From: Chlorokybus atmophyticus
Taxonomy: Eukaryota; Plantae; Mesostigma and Chlorokybus algae
Reading direction: 5' to 3'
Length of the DNA stretch: 64,000 nucleotides
Assembly: GCA_009103225.1 (NCBI GenBank)
Contig: RHPI01001616.1
Coordinates: 126,640 to 190,639, forward strand
Part shown: piece after piece, positions 535-47,700 of the stretch
Layout: every line of letters starts with the position of its first letter
Numbering within the stretch: position 1 is the first letter of the stretch
Made by a program: the position numbers and the translations under genes
Notes under the pieces: model-generated
The model's database searches: none
The model's input: only the letters and a program-made list of their open reading frames with translations
What the model was told of the DNA's origin: nothing

Positions 535-2585
535 CCGGACCGGGCGTACTTTTTCATGTGTTGGTTGTGCAGTCCGGGCTTTGCAGCGCGAGCAAGCGCT
601 GATCCTGTTCTTGCGCGTGTCCATCTTGTCACGTCAACCAGCAGTCTTCACCCGACTGACAACGGCAAAGAAGCTGCTTGTAGCGATGAAGTTGAAATGT
701 ATGTTGACATACACACGTGCAAGTGACACGCCAACAACATCAACACAAGAGCATGACTGCTACTGCCGCCACAGCATCCGCACACATGCTACATCGTGAC
801 CTCTCTTCTTCATTGCAACAAGTCTGGGCTTTATACCCGGCCAGTCTCTACACACGTCTACATTGGCAAGCACCGCGTGCGCTATACTCAGCCGATTGCT
901 GTTCTGTAAGCTACGCTGTCTAGCTCACAACCAGAGCTTTCCAACAAGCTAAGCCACGCCTGCTAAGCTTACGTATCCACAAAGCTACGCGGTTTCTCCC
1001 AACGCTCTACTCAGCATCTGGTCCGGAGTCCGTCCTGGCTCGACCATCTTGCTAAGTCCGGAGTCCACGTGCTCAGCCCATACCTTCGACCCTCAACTTC
1101 TATATGAAGGGCAAGCTGACCGGATACAAGCATCACCCATGTAATACCTTCAACAATGTATGCAGTACACGGCACAGGGCCAAGTATGAACTCATCACTG
1201 ATATCCTTACTTGGTCCCACTTCAACACGTTCAGTTCAACATTGACAACAGTCAATCCGGACAGTAGCATCCCGGTGATGGTAACACTCGTTTTCCTGTG
1301 GCGCAAGCAGTCAACAAACTTGAGTGAGATGTTGAACAGGTGGCTGCATGGCAAACAATTCAATTCAAGCAAACAATGCACGCACCGCTGCCAGTAGGCC
1401 TGATCATTGTACTGACGTTTTGCAACCCAGCCAGCATGGCTTCTGTCTGGCCAGGATGGGCAACACAAAGCCCAGTCTGGCTTAGGTCGCCCCTTTGAGG
1501 AAAAGGCTGAGCCCACATGGCTGTGCGACCTGCAGCACCCGACTTAGATGTCTGCAGTTGGCAAACTTCATCAGTAAATAGGGGATTAAACATATTCTGT
1601 ACACATCTGCATACTACTCATGTACTCGCTTACAAACAATCATCGCACTTGCATGTGCAAATATACGGTACGTTTGGGCATATTCCGTGCTAGCGTAACC
1701 ATATGCATGTAGTATGGAGGGGGCCATGCATGCATGCATGCACGCACGCCTACTCATATACATGTATGCATTGTGAAGCCATGTTTGCATTCGCGCTAGG
1801 CCGCATGCATGCCTGCATGCATGCGATATAGACTATTTTACAGACATCGCAAAAGTTAGCTCTCGAGGTAGCTGTGGTCCGTGCAAAACCTACCACCAAT
1901 CCATGCAAGCACGCTTGACTAAAAAGACAGCATTTGCATAGGTCGTACAACGAAACCACTGTACCAAACCATCGATGTTAACGAAAGCAGCACTGCTTCT
2001 GCTTGCCTACCTGCCGTGCGGCACGGCAGGTAGGCATTGCCTTGTTGTTGACGGCGCCGTGCGTGGATATAAAGCACTCGAGCCCTTTCACGCACCCTCT
2101 CTAGCAGCAACCTCTTCACCTATTGTCACAAACAACACCCACACTGTGCCAGCACCAACGTGCCAGCGCCTCAAACCTGGCCGAACTAACAAGCTGCCTA
2201 CCAGCATGCTCTAGCAGGCAGCAGCTACGGAGCAAACCAGACAACAACTTGCCAAAAGCTTCAGCCAAAAGGTCTACAGCAATCCACTAGTCCTGCCTTC
2301 GCCCGCTGCCTCCGTCGCCGTCAGCAGCACCGCCGCCGCCACCGTTACCGCCACCACCAACGTCACCGACACTGCCGCCAACATGCACCAGCAGCTATGT
2401 CCTGCGCACATGTGCATGCATGCAGTCTTGTGCGGAAGAGCACAAGCTGTGCAAATTGCTTGTGCTACTAGGTTGCACCCAGGACGAGTCCACTGCAAAG
2501 GTTCTGGCTCGGGACCCACGCCTACGTCATGCGGGCCGGACGAGGGACTCTGACTTAGGGTTGAGGCCGTTTGAATTATGGCGCG
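535..2585 (-). pseudogene. Decayed, inverted copy of the promoter and 5' exons of the RecQ-RdRP gene (homologous to about 35245-37800)
   Basis: Minus-strand peptides WAQPFPQ...HPGQTEAMLAGLQNVSTMIRPTGSG (1394-1530), GMLLSGLTVVNVELNVLKWDQ (1213-1300) and QEQDQRLLALQSPDCTT (563-613) match exons at 37218-37800. Intron sequence is also shared (e.g. ttgtttgccatgcagcca vs aatgtttgccatgcagcca; tgcccaa..gtacc..ttgcacatgca.gtgcgatg). The copy carries deletions, frameshifts, a stop and an insertion of about 450 bp. Confidence 0.88.
2004..2036. repeat. Perfect 16-bp inverted repeat with 1-nt loop
   Basis: tgcctacctgccgtgc-g-gcacggcaggtaggca. Confidence 0.95.
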
Positions 2586-38700: not shown

Positions 38701-41700
38701 ACCTCGTTGACTACATTCACAATGAGTACCAAAATCAGAGCGTCATCATCTACGCGCTTACTGTCGAAGACTGCTACACTATTCAACAGAAGTTGAAGGT
38801 AAGAGAGAACAGAGCACGGTCAACTCGTCACTCCTCGCTGTGAGTGTAGTAGTTGTATGCTAAGTCCTGTGCAGAACTGCGGTTTGGATTCAGTTGAGGT
38901 CTTCCATTCGAGTGACCACAAAACACGAGGGTTGAGCGAGAAAGGTGAGGATGGAGACCTCGCATTTGCTAGCTCTGTCTTCTTGGTATACATGTCATGT
39001 CTGGTTTTGTGTGCTCAGAGAAGCAGGCAAGGTATGAACGATGGAAAGCGGGTAGAGTCCAGGTGAGCATTGTGTTCGTTTTGCATGCTGATAACACACA
39101 CAAACATATAGAGGCGGGTGACACACACATTCACACAGATAAACAGTAAGAGCACAACAAACAGTCGCGTTGCAACCAAACAGATGCAGGTCAAGCGTGT
39201 ATACGCATGTGTGATGTGACATGCGCTTCAGTTGTGCTGCATCTTAACTGTTGTGTCGCCGTTATGCAGGTGATGGTAGCCACCAACGCTTTTGGTGAAG
39301 GCGTTGACAAGGCTGATGTCCGGCTGGTGGTCTTCTACTCAATACCTTTGGATCTGGTTCGCTGGGTCGAAGTACGTGTCCATGATGTTGTCATTCATAC
39401 ACGATGGAGATGCGTCTGTGCGGGCTCGTGCGCGTGCGCGTGCGCGTGCATGTGCGTATGTGTTGTTGATGTTGTTGCTGCTTTTGTTCTTGTGAAGACT
39501 GCATCCCAACTCTTGCTACTTGGCAGGGCATTGGCAGAGCTGGCCGGGATGGTGAGCCTGCAACAGCCATTACTTTTTACAGCTTCGATGACAAGGACGC
39601 AGCTGAAGGGTTGCTGTCAATGAAAAGGTGATATCAAGTACTGCAGCATAGTGCTTTTCGGACAATTAATATTCAAGCTAGTGTATCTGCAGTGATCGCC
39701 ATGAAGAGAAGAGACAAAACCTGCTCAACGTGATCAGAGTGTGGGAAGCGGACTTCCTCTGCAGAGTGCGCCATGTTGAGAAGGTGCACACACGCATTGA
39801 TGCCCACGAACACACGCACACATGAGCACGTGCATGCATATTCATTCGATCACTTGCTCACTTGCTTACTCATTCACACATACCCAAGATCGCACACGCG
39901 CACACGCCCACACATATGCTTGCCGACATCTATTCTATGCAGTTACTTGGCGACGATCCCGGCGCTGACTGCGGCAACTGCGATGTGTGCAATCCGACGG
40001 ACAACGCAGCAGCCATCAACACGATCGAAGCGAGAGACGACATGCTGAAGATGTTGGAGCACGTGCGGCGCAACGAGGGCATCACGTTGAAAACACTCAT
40101 CGAGATGTTACGACAGACCTCCACGACAAAGCACAAGTCGCGCGCATTCTGGACGGTAAGCATGCGATTATGACAACACGCACACGCCCCTGCGCACACA
40201 CACGTGCACGCGCCACGCATGCAATCGCAGAGACACATGCTGCGCTTGACGTGCTCATGCATACTTGACCACTGCCCTCCAGAGACTGGGAGTGCGTGCT
40301 CTGCTTGATGGCTACCTGGAAGACGAGCATGTCCCATACTCCAAAGAGGTATTACGTGTGATTGATTGGGCGCTTGTGGCTGCGTGTGATCTTGTGCGTG
40401 TGCGCGTGCGCGTGTGCGCGTATTTGTGGCTGTGTGTACGCGTGTATCTGTCTAGGTGATTGGTGTGTGCAAGCACCAGTACATACGCGTATATATATAT
40501 ACTTATGCGCGTGTGTGCGTGTGTCTGCCCGCGTGTGTTTGACCATTGATTCAGACTTGGTGCAGGGGGGAAAAGGTGGCAACTATTGTAAGCTCAGCCT
40601 TGGTCTAAAGGGTTTCACCTTTGTGATCAACCCGCCAGACACTTGGTCATTGAAGGCTGAGGACGGCCTGGTAATATAGCTTCATATCCTCAAGCTGATC
40701 CAAACATCAACTTGTAGTGCTCTGTCAGTGCAAGTTAATCTCACACGACAGGTTGATCGTTGTCTTGCAGGACCAGCACGTCAAGGAGTGCACCGAGTGC
40801 CAAGAGACTGGCGACCTTCACTTGTGTGACTTCTGCGAACAAGCCTTCCATAAAGATTGCCTTCCACAACACGCAGGTTGAACATATATCTACACAAGTG
40901 TGCGCGCGCGCGCGCGTGTGCGTGTGTAATGGCCGTTATTTTACTGCTTTCTGTTGACAATACTTACCTGTGTGGCAGTTCCTGCGGCTAATGCTGAGTG
41001 CTGGGCTTGCCCGAAATGCCTGGAGAAGGGCCTGACGCCCAGACAACTCTACCTTACGCGCAAGCTGGTGTTTGCATGGCTGCCAATGGCAGCATTGAAG
41101 GCAAGCTGATGGCACATACACAACATGCATTCACGACAATAATGAACTGTACTTGTAACGTTTACTTGTGTACTTTGCAGACCATTTTTAGGTCAGTCCC
41201 GGGCAAAACGCTCAAAACACCAAACCACATACTGGCACATGCCAAGGTGAGTGGATATGTGGTTTTTTTGTTTTTCATGCAGTGGGTTATGTCAGTCATT
41301 GCCAATCAACTTTAAAGTGATTTGTGTATGCGGCATGTGTTCATACAGGAGGAAGGAGCCCACACCAGCGATGTGTGCGTGCCTTGTCTCAATTGGAAGA
41401 TCTGTTGGGCAGACGTGGACGACAGGCAACAAGTGTGCGTACCAGAAGTGTACGTCTGCAAGGCTCCCAGAAAGGGCAACCATCACCGTTTCTATTCAGC
41501 GCAGGAGGTGAGCAATACCAAAGCAAAAAACGTTTGGCTGTTCGTTCAGCTGCATCTGTTGCATCAATATATACAAAAGGTGCAAGTGGGGTAGCACACA
41601 TATATTATGTCCAAACCCATGCAACACATCACACCACACCTGCACTAACCTATATACCACATACACGACGACCGGGCCAAGCCAAGCATGCGCTTTCATG

Positions 41701-44700
41701 CTACCTACTTGCTAACCCCCCCCCNNNNNNNNNNNNNNNNNNNNNNNNNNNNNNNNNNNNNNNNNNNNNNNNNNNNNNNNNNNNNNNNNNNNNNNNNNNN
41801 NNNNNNNNNNNNNNNNNNNNNNNNNNNNNNNNNNNNNNNNNNNNNNNNNNNNNNNNNNNNNNNNNNNNNNNNNNNNNNNNNNNNNNNNNNNNNNNNNNCC
41901 CCCCCCCCTGTCATGCATGCATGCACTTGCAGCCTTGTTTACCTGCACATGCGCCTTGGTATGTGTGTGCAGGTGGGTTGTCTTCGTTTTAAACGCACGC
42001 TTGTGCGCACACACATACACCATGCATTACTGATGCACCACTGATTTGCGCAAACATCTATCTCCAGATGGAGCGGTACATGGGTAGCCAATGGCGGCGC
42101 AAAAACATCGTCAAGCACGTTGCTAAAGCCATCAGACAAAGTCCTTTTCATCAGCAGCTACAGTTCGTCATGAACGTGCTCAGCGGGTCCAACTTAGTGC
42201 AGAAGGATGTGTCGGACTCCTCTGATGATGACGAGTCTGTTCAAGAAGCGGAGCAGAAGGACACCACTGAAGGTATAAGTGATATGCATACATCGACTTA
42301 CCCAGTACTGCACTCTCAGGTTGCATATGTTGTTAAGTGGTTGCATGTGTCCACATATGCTCGTTGTGCCAGTTTTGCCATTATTGTGCCTGTGGTGGTC
42401 TGTGGTGAAGTGTGCATGTCACCTGAAGCAAGCAGATTCACGCATGCTACTGTCTGTGCTCACTTAACAACCAAAGAAGTTTGTGCTTCTGTCTGTTCAC
42501 ATGTTGTCTCAGATGAAGGGCTTGACCTGCCTGACATTGAGGAGACAAAGCGGAGAAACATGAAGAGAAATCAGGCGTTTCTGGAGGGGATCATGCAGGC
42601 AACACAGAAGAGGCAAAAGATGGATGCAGATGCAGAGGGAAGCGGCAACGCAGAAGCTCAAGAAGTGGAAGAATGGCTTGATGAAGAGGGTGAGTTGTAC
42701 CAGCTTTGGAGCATTGATGTGGTTGTGGGCAGCAATTGACATCAAGCTCTTACATGCAGAGAGAGACTGCGAAGACAATGAGAGCATGCTGTCAACGCCT
42801 TGGACAAGGCTGCCAGCTGTTGTTTGCCAAAGACTAGAGAAGCTGGACTTTGAACGCAGGTGCGTGTGCGCGTTGGTGTTCGATGCGCAGCAGCCTGCTA
42901 TATGCGTTGCTGGCAAGCAATGTGTGCGTGTGTGCGCACGTGTGCCCATGCGCATGGGCGTGTGTGCGTGTGCGGCTGCTTGATAGTTCGCCTGCGTGTG
43001 CATGTCCACAGGCTTGAACCACTATGATTTACATAATCAACGTTGTGGACTTCGTTTGCAGGTTTCTGGCAGAACAAGTGTTAGACAGCTACCATCCCTC
43101 TTTCCGGACTCACGCCGGCACACCTCTCGACACTTCAAGGCGCAACTGCTTCCTCAAGTCTCACATCACGGACGAAGTCATCAAACAGTTGCTCTCATCA
43201 CCTGTGTCAATTGTTCGTACTCACCTTCTGGACGTGTTATCAAATTCTGATGTGCGGCTCTCAAGCTTCGGTGCACAACAGGTGAGAATGTCACATGCTG
43301 TTGTGTGAAGATTGTGGTGCTGTTGATGCTCCCACATTGTGTATGCGCATCTCAGCTCAAGGAGGCAAAGCAGAATGGGGCTGGAAAGAAAGCCTTTCTG
43401 AATGTGCGGATGCCATCAGAGCTGGAGCTTGGTATGTGCTATGTGCTATCTACTATAAGTTGCAAAAAGTTGATCTTTGTTACCACCCGACTAAATTGAA
43501 GTGTCGCACTACTGAGTGATCTTAATTCTCTTGATGATGCAGACACGCAGCAAGAAAAGCTGACATACAGAGTGACAGTTTCAACCGTTAAGAATGTTCA
43601 CCCGCTGAAACTGCGCGTGCAGCTCACTGGTCCCTTCATTGCAGCAAAAGGTTTGATACGTGCATTCTGTTGCGTGCGCGAGCGTGTGCATAACTTCACA
43701 CATCAAACACACAACATGTGACCATGTGTGCTCTTGGTAGGGTGCCGCGCCCATCGCAAATTTGGTAGCGCCCGCTTTCTGCGAGTTCACTGTGGGCGCA
43801 GCGTCTGGTACAATGCAAGCCGACTCGCCCAGATTGTTGACGAGACTTTTGTTGTGGCTGGGAGGCACTACCAATACATCTTTGGCAAAGCTCAACAAGG
43901 TTGGCACTTGTGCTTCTAGCGTTGGTCCATGCAGCACGCATGCAGTATATGTATACACAGATATGCATACATATGGATTATACAACGCACAGAAGTTTGC
44001 ACATTTTGACGCATCTCTTCCTTTGCACATTTTTGCTCAACGACGCTGTCACTCTCTACTCAGAGACACTATTCTTCTTTGCCACGCACGGGGCCAACAT
44101 CCCGACCAAGGATGAGATAACTGTCCAGCAGTTTCATGACTGGGCCTTGCCGCGCGTCAATGCAAGCCACATGTCCAGAAGCAAGTTCAACTCCCGGTTT
44201 GCCTTGAGCTTCAGCGAGTCAGGTCAGGACTAGCTACACCTGTTGGTATGCAGTGCATGTTGGAAAACACAGAGACGAGTGGGTGTGCGTGTGCATGTGG
44301 GTGGGTGTTTGCATATGTGTCTGTGTGTGTGAGAGCGTATGTGCACGCGTGTGTGCATGTGCGTGCCAGAAATAAGAAGAGAGTGTGCTCGCGCGTGTAT
44401 GTGCGTACTTACAGTGTGTCCACCACAGATGCTACAGTGGAACTGGACCCCACGCAAGCAACGCTCATCCCTGACGGATACGCGGCTGACACGAACAATT
44501 GCCTGACGGACGGGAGCGGCTTCATCCACTTGGACTTGGCGCACAGAATGTGGGAAAAGCTTGGCAGCAACCCCCTCGACGGCCTCCCGGGCGCCTTCCA
44601 AGTAAACAAAAGCCCAGATGCATCAAACTATAATCAGCTTACTCAATGTAAGTGTTTGCTCGGGTGCAGATGCGCTGGATGGGAGCGAAAGGCGTGTGGA

Positions 44701-47700
44701 CCGTCTTGCCACCCAACCAGTGGAGATGGCCAGACAAGCTGATGGCGTACCGACACTCGCAGAATAAGTTTGACATCCCTCAACCTGACACCAACCAGGT
44801 GCGCACGCCAGTATCACACATCAAGCACACGCACATGCACAAGCACAAGCACAAGTGTTGATTCTGATACGTTATCACAGCGTTGTTTGGAGGTCTGTGC
44901 GTATGCATCGGAGTACGGCCCTGGCCGCCTCAACAGGCAGGCAATGCCGCTGCTCATCTCACGCGGGATGACTGTTGATATGGCGGTTGAGCAACAGAAG
45001 GAGGTTCTTGAGACGGTAAAGGGTTGTTTTCGAGTATGACGAATGCGCGTGTATGCATGGGCACCAACTGCTTGTGAATGCAACAGAAAATTCAGGAACG
45101 CGTTCATACACTTGCGTGCACAAACACGCACACATGCACCTCAACGGATGTTTATGCTCCGCTTGTGTATTTTCGAGAGCTAAAGTACCAAGCTGAGCCG
45201 GCCTTTTGCTCTGTAGTTGTCCAATATGTTCACAAGCTCAAGCGCTGCGATAGATGTCCTGCATTCAGCTCAGGTATAAAGCCTGTTTGACTTGCTGTCT
45301 GCACCATCAACCTCCCCTGTTGTATACCTTGATGAGAGAAAGCTATTGCTCAATTATCACAGGCTGGAATTGAAGGCAAGGCATTGCGAATGCTAGAAGC
45401 TGGCTTCGAGCCTCTGAAGGACAGACACTTGTACAACAAGCTTTTGGAAGTGTACAAGAAGCGCGTTCGCGAACTGGACAATAACCACATCACTGTGTTG
45501 CGATCACAGAGGATGATTGCACAGGTGGGGTGGTTTTACGAACTTGTTATGTGGTTGTATGTTGGTGTGTCGTCTAAACACGTTTGTGATGCAGCCTGAC
45601 CCGTTTGACCCGCCGGTGCTCGGGCCAGGAGAGGTATTCTTGTCGTCGTCAAGGAAGATCAAAGGGCGCTCGGTGTTGTGTGTGCAGGTATGTTCTGTAT
45701 TCTTGTTGTAACTACTTTGTCACAACAGGCACGCGTTACTTGTCTTACTTGTGTCTGCCCACTCATACGGCTTGCATCTGACCTTCACCTTTTGTATTAC
45801 CTTGGGATACAAACCCAACCTGTGTTGTGTTTGTTTGTGTTGTGTTGATTGATGTGCCTGTACTGTGTGGTTGGCATTGCAACCAATAGTGAGGCTGACG
45901 TTGTGCTGGGTAGGGAGATGTCGTCATCATGAATTCGCCATGCACACTGCCAAGTGACGTGATCAAGGCAAGAGCTGTCAACTGTGCTCAGCTCCTCGAA
46001 TTGGGTCACCAGGTGAAAACTCACGGGCACTCTGCCTTAAGTGTTACAACTCGCACGCGCGCGCGCTTCCACCCGCATGTGCTGCGCGTGCGCGTGTACA
46101 TGTGCATGTGTGCATGCACGTGGCAACAGCAGACGGCATAAGCACAATGTGGTTGACACAAGGAGAATTGTCGTTCTGTGCACAGGACGTCCTCTTTATC
46201 AACATCGTTGATAAAGTCAGCTTGATGGCGAGGGCGTCTGGAGGCGACTTTGATGGCGACCAGCCGCTCATCATCTGGGATCCGTGAGTGCATCAATGTC
46301 TGCAATAGGAAGCAATTGCACTTTGACCTACACAACAACAAAACACATGTCGTGTGTGGATTTTGACTTGCAGAGAATTGGTGGGCTGCATCACCTGCAA
46401 TCTTGATCACATTGAGGAGCCTTCCTTAAATGAGTATGTGAGAAAGTCAGTTGCGCTTGTAGGAGAGGACATACCAACTGCAACAAAGGTGAGAGACGTT
46501 GTTGCTTATGGCACTGGTCGTGCGCACGTGGGTGCGTGTCTTGCGGTTTAGACCGCAGCTTCTTTGTTGCAGGAGCATGTCCTTGACTGTCAGGGTGTTG
46601 TCGAGGACATCCGAGAGACTTCGAAGCTCCTGGACCGCATACAAACCAAACACTCCCCAGGTTGCTGCAGCTGCGCACCCACGCACGCGCCTGCTGGCTC
46701 ACTGACGTACTCACTGACACACGCACACGCACAAGCTTGGCCTCACTGCACTGCGAATGGTACTGCAGAGCACCCCTTGGCTGTCAAGCTTGGATACCTA
46801 CACCGTCAGGCGCTTGATGCTGAGAAGCAAGGCACCAAGGTGAGACACACGCGCACACACATGCACATGAGCATGTATGCACAAGCACATGTATTATAGT
46901 GCGTGCACGTACGCACATGTGCGCGCACGTGCGCACACGCACTATACTACAATATGCAAAGGCAGACACTGCGTGCCTGCACACCAGTGCACTGTTTGTG
47001 AACATCCACTGTGCGTGCAGCTGTCCTGGGCAAGCTTGAAGGAAGAGGTTAAGGTCGCTTTGAGTGACGCAATGCAGGACGACACTGAGGCATCTCCGCT
47101 TCGCACAGCCCTGGATGTAAGTCTCAAAGAGCATTCCAAAACGATTGAAGAGCTGAAGGTATTGTTGTTTGTCCTAAGCTTCAGTGTTTCTGACCAAGCA
47201 ATGGTGCGTTGATGCAAGTAGACAACCTCTGCTTTAACTACCTGCAGGAGCAATCGGATGCTGCAGCATTAGATACGGATCTGTTGTTGCCTGGGCGTAG
47301 CGCTTATATGCAAGAAGCACGCAAACAACACCGTGCGTACAACAGGGGGTAAGCACATAAACATGCACTGGTTCTCAAGTACACACACACACACACAATC
47401 GTTATTCGGTATGAGAGTCCATTGTGCTGATCTGTTAAGTACTTGTCTTTGGCATGTTTGTTAAACTGCTGCTGTTTCAACTACAGGTTGCGTGAAGTGC
47501 TGTCGAAGTTTGAACCGCTGCTGAAAAATGATACACTATCGGAGCGGCGAGAAGCATTGTTGGCTGAAAGGAATGCGCAATGCAGCGCCGTTAAACATGA
47601 GTTTTTGACAGCTTTTCACAAGACGCCACAAGAAGACTGGTGAGAACATGCAACCCACACTTGCTGTAGGTTGTGCTCTGGACTTTGTTTGTTGCATACT

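Follow-up and report, generated by a model that had tools for sequence, protein, structure and literature searches.

A PHD finger lies between RecQ helicase and RNA-dependent RNA polymerase parts encoded by one expressed gene of Chlorokybus atmophyticus

In Neurospora, the RNA- and DNA-dependent RNA polymerase (RdRP/DdRP) QDE-1 needs the RecQ helicase QDE-3, together with RPA, to make aberrant RNA and double-stranded RNA (dsRNA) from DNA (PMC2950127). In land plants, two readers of histone H3 unmethylated at lysine 4 (H3K4me0), SHH1 (through its SAWADEE domain) and ZMP (through its PHD finger), decide where Pol IV-RDR2 makes dsRNA and small interfering RNA (siRNA) precursors (PMC9699677). Fusions of a helicase to an RdRP are described from oomycetes as well as Dictyostelium, Hydra and Nematostella, with DEAD/Helicase_C at the N-terminus followed by the RdRP; they were treated as carrying DEAD-box helicase domains and were discussed in relation to Dicer, and neither RecQ nor a PHD is mentioned for them (PMC4791657). 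For Chlorokybus, a survey of the small-RNA genes of green plants records 'ancient RDR-like homologs' and mentions neither a helicase nor RecQ. We examined a 64,000-nucleotide stretch of the genome of Chlorokybus atmophyticus (contig RHPI01001616.1, positions 126,640 to 190,639 of the forward strand; hereafter the window), and describe one expressed multi-exon gene of about 1,900–1,950 residues that joins a RecQ helicase, a PHD finger and a QDE-1-like RdRP in a single polypeptide.

The region joining the two enzymes, here called the bridge, is in frame with both of them, and two independent studies show it transcribed and spliced. The public gene model of the locus (P0001; eukprot jgi/Chlat1/2766/Chrsp187S02905; 1902 residues, Chlorokybus) was recovered by a phmmer search of one exon of the bridge (exon D, below) against 1.84 billion representatives, and residue numbers refer to this model throughout. 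Pfam placed DEAD at residues 243–444, Helicase_C at 497–610 and RdRP at 1178–1707 (3.3e-78), with weak matches to RecQ_Zn_bind at 635–676 (E 0.11) and to PHD at 794–836. The helicase part carries the superfamily-2 motifs and the zinc motif CGNCDVC, and its best matches are members of the RecQ family (BLM, 1.7e-37; RECQ1, 4e-35; E. coli RecQ, 3.8e-30), to which it belongs on these grounds. The polymerase part belongs to the eukaryotic cellular RdRP family (PF05183) by its profile match and by its D-x-D-G-D loop; among solved structures QDE-1 (2.7e-26) was a nearer match than RDR2 of Arabidopsis (3e-17). The protein retains intact catalytic motifs (GSGKS, DECH, GRAGRDG and, at residue 1598, DFDGD), and both enzyme parts are apparently active.

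The same two activities that QDE-3 and QDE-1 provide in Neurospora are thus predicted here, with an RdRP that best matches QDE-1; whereas the Neurospora proteins are separate, Chlorokybus has both in one polypeptide with the PHD between them. To our knowledge, no chromatin-reader domain is known for either QDE-3 or QDE-1. Unlike the helicase of the oomycete, Dictyostelium, Hydra and Nematostella fusions, that of Chlorokybus is a RecQ with its zinc/winged-helix region, and the PHD comes next. The land-plant reader acts on Pol IV as a protein of its own, whereas Chlorokybus has a reader-type finger within the RdRP polypeptide itself. No description of a RecQ-PHD-RdRP architecture was found in a full-text literature search covering one library. 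The greater novelty is the RecQ-RdRP fusion itself; the PHD belongs to a known kind of reader, and what is new about it is the architecture of its host.

Transcript contigs from four public runs (X1 to X4) were aligned to positions 39700–45600 of the window (5,901 letters) at 95% likeness; X1 and X2 come from the two independent studies. The parts of the bridge and the exons immediately before it are listed below in window coordinates, with the support for each.

39941–40155, 40283–40348 and 40566–40670, plus strand: three exons with the RecQ zinc motif CGNCDVC and a winged-helix-like region (spliced X1 and X2 contigs; open frame).
40771–40876, plus strand: exon A, the N-terminal two thirds of the PHD, DQHVKEC...GDLHLCDFC...H..C (joints 40670/40771 and 40876/40979).
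40979–41100, plus strand: exon B, the closing W-x-C-x2-C of the PHD and a linker, with a GC donor (X1 piece 40975–41098).
41181–41246, plus strand: exon C, a 22-residue linker without a recognisable domain (depth, letter count and frame).
41349–41507, plus strand: exon D, an orphan Cys/Trp-rich core, P0001 residues 875–927 (X2 contig 41347–41503 and X1 depth).
41508–42067, plus strand: GT..AG intron holding the assembly gap 41725–41898 (splice sites and zero depth).
42068–42272, plus strand: exon E, a predicted helix AQE/MERYMGSQ (P0001 residues 925–935), then basic residues and an acidic tail of Ser/Asp/Glu (X1 piece 42066–42270).
42513–42689, plus strand: exon F, an acidic/basic low-complexity linker toward the RdRP (joint 42272/42513 in X1 and X2; frame).

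The alignment to RECQ1, which supports the upstream exons (39941–40670), reaches to about residue 712. In bacterial RecQ, BLM and WRN, an HRDC domain follows the RQC region; it is absent in RECQ1, RECQ4 and RECQ5. No HRDC match was found in P0001 by Pfam (E≤10), and the PHD takes that position, so that an earlier reading of the letters alone (the sequence-only reading) was correct in placing the module after the RecQ zinc/winged-helix region, where HRDC usually stands. Farther downstream, Pfam found no match on exon E or exon F; exon F contains KRR and KRQK stretches that are possibly nuclear-localisation-like.

The PHD finger is, by its sequence, genuine: a canonical C4HC3 finger belonging to the cage-less class of CHD4, PHF21A and AIRE. 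Its zinc ligands are C794, C797, C806, C809, H814 and C817, followed by W-A-C-P-K-C, and they have the C4HC3 spacing, taken as C-x2-C-x(8-21)-C-x2-C-x4-H-x2-C-x(12-46)-C-x2-C; all eight, along with the W-x-C-P-x-C ending, align with the fingers of CHD4, PHF21A and AIRE. Exons A and B each encode a portion of the finger, and the join between them is a splice supported by RNA. The peptide strings quoted in the sequence-only reading are encoded on the plus strand where it had put them, as seen in the translations of exons A, B, D and E; exon D closes with ...EVYVCKAP...HRFYSAQE, and the first letters of exon E read MERYM. When the whole PHD (residues 784–842) was compared with PDB by phmmer, the nearest solved relatives were CHD4 PHD1/2 (4e-9), PHF21A/BHC80 (8e-8) and AIRE PHD1 (6e-6), which bears out the class (AIRE-PHD1, CHD4, BHC80) assigned from the letters alone; further matches were PHF12, KMT2C, SP140, ZMYND11, TRIM28, CHD5, KDM5B/5A PHD1 and ATXR5. 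Exon A alone matched PHF21A/BHC80 (8.8e-5), and also CHD4 and AIRE PHD1, and it matched the Pfam PHD family with an E of 0.0019. The earlier view that the finger has no aromatic cage also held: Ala stands two residues before the zinc His (E-Q-A-F-H), with no Trp there, and the nearest relatives are likewise cage-less. As in the cage-less type-1 PHDs (PHF21A/BHC80, CHD4 PHD1/PHD2, AIRE PHD1 and the plant ZMP), the finger combines the C4HC3 spacing with G-[DE]-L-x-x-C-D-x-C, A/Y-F/Y-H-x2-C-L and W-x-C-P-x-C. Unlike those fingers, which have Asp or Glu there, it has Lys792 two residues before its first Cys; and its host is an RNA-silencing enzyme, whereas theirs are a remodeller, a demethylase-complex subunit and a transcription factor.

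The explanation that we favour, with a probability of about 0.6, is that the polypeptide has the order RecQ, zinc/winged-helix region, PHD, orphan Cys-rich segment, acidic linker and QDE-1-like RdRP, and that the PHD, as part of a bridge between the two enzymes, docks on H3 tails. Binding of the H3 tail by this PHD is likely. The finger would dock the enzyme on nucleosomal H3 tails, and unwinding by RecQ and synthesis of aberrant or double-stranded RNA by the RdRP would thereby take place on chromatin, not in trans as with QDE-3 and QDE-1 of Neurospora. Such a mechanism would have parallels both in the dependence of QDE-1 on QDE-3 and RPA and in the choice of Pol IV-RDR2 sites by SHH1 and ZMP.

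Several observations weigh against this explanation. Lys792, with Glu793 adjacent, occupies the position that caps K4, two residues ahead of the first Cys; the aligned relatives have D there in PHF21A (H-E-D-F-C) and in CHD4 PHD1, and E in CHD4 PHD2, and the N-terminal Asp/Glu of H3K4me0-reading (type 1) PHDs was not found at this position in the Chlorokybus finger. Type-1 PHDs recognise H3K4me0 through 'an N-terminal aspartic acid' (PMC9699677), and for TRIM28/KAP1, a close relative in our match list, a figure legend of that paper states that H3 is not bound (PMC9699677). The Pfam PF00628 match on P0001 reached 16.8 bits (E 0.007), below the gathering threshold of 24 bits. The two AlphaFold2 models of the bridge, described below, were both poor and demonstrate no structure for the orphan segment; and the reader function is predicted from the sequence of one gene. 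The sequence-only reading had described an acidic N-terminal patch on the finger: D788 and E793 are indeed acidic, but the position that is decisive in the aligned relatives is K792. Glu793, with Asp788 nearby, might substitute for the K4-capping acid. Because K792 occupies the capping site, specificity for H3K4me0 is not readable from the letters; the class of the finger makes such a preference for unmethylated K4 plausible, and Lys792 makes it uncertain. The proposal that the enzyme is steered to H3K4me0 therefore stands in one part, the presence of a reader-class PHD in a RecQ-RdRP enzyme, but lacks the capping acid, which is replaced by K792. The feed-forward heterochromatin loop that went with that proposal is possible, by inference only.

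We consider it unlikely that the PHD is no histone reader at all, and that it makes intramolecular or protein-protein contacts of the TRIM28/KAP1 kind while the rest of the bridge is a lineage-specific, largely flexible linker without reader function. TRIM28/KAP1, SP140 and ATRX-ADD are also among the matches of the PHD, K792 stands in place of the acidic K4 contact, the bridge is without relatives and yielded models of low confidence, and long acidic tails of low complexity are present in exons E and F, all of which this alternative would accommodate. However, the relatives with the best scores are true binders of the H3 tail; the alignments show conservation both of the G-D-L-x-L-C-D strand, which pairs with the H3 backbone, and of the Asp that follows the third Cys; and the enrichment of Cys and Trp in exon D argues for structure beyond the finger.

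The segment that follows the PHD, some 60–70 residues, is most fittingly called an orphan that may bind zinc, with modelled strands and a helix, and not a demonstrable MBD. Its pattern in exon D is C884-x2-C887-x2-W890 ... C904-x6-C911 ... HH-R-F-Y-S; it contains two Trp, and five Cys within 32 residues (P of about 0.001 against the protein's own composition, for a stretch picked after the sequence had been inspected). Searches were made with single exons and with P0001, which differs from the RNA-true peptide in 11 residues of exon B and in the exon at 42760–42859. Pfam MBD (PF01429) gave no match at E≤10 on exon D, on residues 850–960 or on six sub-ranges, and at the same threshold neither zf-CW (PF07496) nor any other credible family gave one on exon D, on the joined peptide of the public model or on six sub-ranges; the HMMER filters hide matches weaker than about E 0.1–0.3, and a very remote relation to MBD could escape them. 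A phmmer search of the segment against PDB sequences returned noise only and no MBD, and an ESM-Atlas language-model search with exon D and with residues 868–960 returned no usable neighbour. The label "MBD-like" given to the segment in the sequence-only reading thus has only a motif seen by eye behind it.

Relatives of the segment were likewise not found. Among the 1.84 billion representatives, phmmer with exon D recovered only its own model and one other entry (P0002), a tandem-repeat protein of no family that matches through the repeated word VC[IV]P[EQ]VY and was set aside as spurious. Word searches with the 92-residue open reading frame (ORF) around exon D, with residues 785–1000 and with the whole of P0001 found nothing eukaryotic; the last found only bacterial RecQ-UvrD proteins. 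The sole match of exon D in a metagenome scan (contig L001, OIXH01006900.1, 6001–6075) was rejected as a bacterial helicase-like ORF, with VVDEAHKL nearby, that contains the chance word DRQQVCVP.

AlphaFold2 was run without an alignment. For residues 785–1000 it gave a confidence (pLDDT, predicted local distance difference test) of 41.7, and the PHD was mis-modelled as helices; for residues 868–960 it gave 50.3, with five short strands at 883–924 and a helix at 925–935. There was no MBD among the fold matches of the low-confidence 868–960 model (Foldseek, best E 1.9; VIA-wide, best Z 3.1, the Chd1 chromodomain; Atlas, TM <0.5). Because of the poor quality of the models (pLDDT 42–50), these fold searches are uninformative and do not refute an MBD.

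That the PHD reads H3K4me0 and the next segment is a degenerate MBD without the methyl-CpG arginines, the two together steering the enzyme to silent chromatin, seems to us somewhat more doubtful than a PHD without reader function. The nearest solved relatives of the PHD are readers of unmethylated K4, as this would require. By eye, and using the MeCP2/MBD consensus (a lead, not a test), W890 stands 16 residues before E-V-Y, which is followed by P..G...F-Y-S..E...Y-M; this mirrors W-x16-D-V-Y...P.G..F-R-S..E...Y-F when insertions totalling four residues are allowed. The low-confidence AlphaFold2 strands are also followed by a helix directly after F-Y-S, as in MBDs. This by-eye motif and the order of strands then helix are the only likeness to the MBD family (PF01429, including its degenerate members that do not bind DNA). 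Against it stand the absence of any profile, sequence or fold match in the searches above, the five Cys in 32 residues, which are not an MBD trait, and K792 at the K4-capping position of the neighbouring finger. Both arginine fingers are missing as well: the equivalents of R111 and R133 of MeCP2, which we take from a by-eye alignment to be a Val/acidic position and Tyr923 (in F-Y-S), agree on this point with the sequence-only reading and its own alignment, in which F-Y-S and an acidic stretch replaced them. The 'MBD' label should not be propagated.

Less probable again is that the orphan segment is a small zinc-binding finger, of the CW type or similar, serving as a second module for contact with histone or nucleic acid beside the PHD. 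The Cys enrichment given above favours it. By eye, against the zf-CW pattern and as a lead only, C884-x2-C887-x2-W-K...C904-x6-C911-x2-P resembles C-x2-C-x-K-W-R...W-x-C-x8-12-C-x2-P-E; and one row of the Atlas results was a zinc-ribbon cluster, but at a TM (template modelling score) of 0.33, which is noise level. However, Pfam zf-CW did not match, the stretch used for the Cys statistic was selected post hoc, and there are no relatives to show that the Cys are conserved. Four Cys can be fitted to such a pattern, but of the three Trp that CW fingers conserve the segment has just one in position (by eye), and it has a single CxxC knuckle; it does not qualify as a zf-CW. A CW-type zinc finger fits the segment by eye about as well as an MBD does, and both are leads, not tests.

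The remaining alternative, that helicase, reader and RdRP come from different genes that an erroneous gene model, or an assembly error at the run of N, has joined, draws on a gap that lies within the finding and on a public model that is wrong in two places (exon B and the exon at 42760–42859), but it is already largely refuted and very improbable, since spliced contigs from two studies cross each junction, the letters counted across the intron with the gap add up exactly, and the frame is open throughout. The X1 and X2 contigs omit each predicted intron at GT..AG, as spliced cDNA does, and they span every junction from 39941 to 45524 with an identity of at least 99%; the longest X1 contig (4183 nucleotides) covers 39941 to past 45524. 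Across the 12 exons of 39941–43431 the frame is open, the phases are consistent and there are no stops. The introns of the region are GT..AG with the sole exception of 41101–41180, which is GC..AG with the strong donor AAG/GCAAGC.

The assembly gap (N at 41725–41898) sits within the 560-nucleotide intron 41508–42067 (GT..AG, phase 0/0). In the X1 contig, position 644 corresponds to 41098 and position 870 to 42066. The 225 letters between them are fully accounted for by exons C (66) and D (159), allowing for two ambiguous AG letters per junction. The X1 depth bins match the exon lengths, and depth is zero at 41670–42063, also on both flanks of the gap. Since exons C and D fill the letter count and depth is zero, neither the gap nor its vicinity hides a further exon. 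Exon D joins exon E directly, in frame and in phase 0 (...F-Y-S-A-Q-E/M-E-R-Y-M), in X1, and P0001 has the same junction. The gap is harmless to the coding sequence. Poly-C runs border it at 41713–41724 and 41899–41909; it is probably a long homopolymer, lying within the intron, that sequencing or assembly did not cross.

The public gene model P0001 needs two corrections when compared with the RNA. In exon B the model ends at a GT donor at 41068, 33 nucleotides before the GC donor at 41101 that is used in the transcripts, and 11 residues (41068–41100) are lost. Farther downstream it skips the exon 42760–42859, with about 34 residues lost and 3 gained in the region 42690–43061.

Exon E, the 240-nucleotide intron after it and exon F lie in one stop-free frame of 248 codons (41993–42736, plus strand), so that a transcript keeping this intron would still be open in frame; no contig retaining the intron between exons E and F was seen among those aligned. 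The window as a whole is intron-rich eukaryotic DNA of about 50% G+C, and low-complexity runs are frequent in its introns, giving long spurious ORFs rich in C, V, H, A and R. Two intronic stretches of the gene, 40394–40524 and 42921–42945, are short GT/GC-rich microsatellite-like sequences that match unrelated X3 and X4 contigs at 95–99% identity; these are repeat cross-matches, not transcripts of the RecQ-RdRP gene. Near the left end of the window, the 5' RecQ part of the gene recurs as a second, diverged copy (560–1680, minus strand) that runs off that end: 37193–37568 matches 1552–1206 (71.7% over 381 nucleotides) and 37723–37775 matches 613–561 (86.8%). This second RecQ copy is an inverted paralogue about 35 kb upstream of the gene.

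Chlorokybus represents the earliest-diverging streptophyte lineage, which branches basally in the plant line. The targeting of RNA-silencing polymerases has been solved in different ways by fungi, fission yeast and land plants, always through separate recruiting proteins. The farthest-reaching account of the present gene is that one polypeptide unites a QDE-3-like RecQ and a QDE-1-like RdRP with a chromatin address of its own (the PHD, perhaps with a degenerate MBD- or CW-like module), that synthesis of dsRNA or aberrant RNA would be tethered in cis to nucleosomes unmethylated at H3K4, and that the enzyme would, as one protein, be the forerunner or an analogue of the way SHH1 and ZMP target Pol IV-RDR2 in land plants; we put this forward tentatively, as an unlikely account in its full extent. 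If true, a reader finger within a RecQ-fused RdRP would be a 'Rosetta stone' linking DNA unwinding, chromatin state and dsRNA synthesis, and the question of how such a polymerase is recruited would become testable with one recombinant protein.

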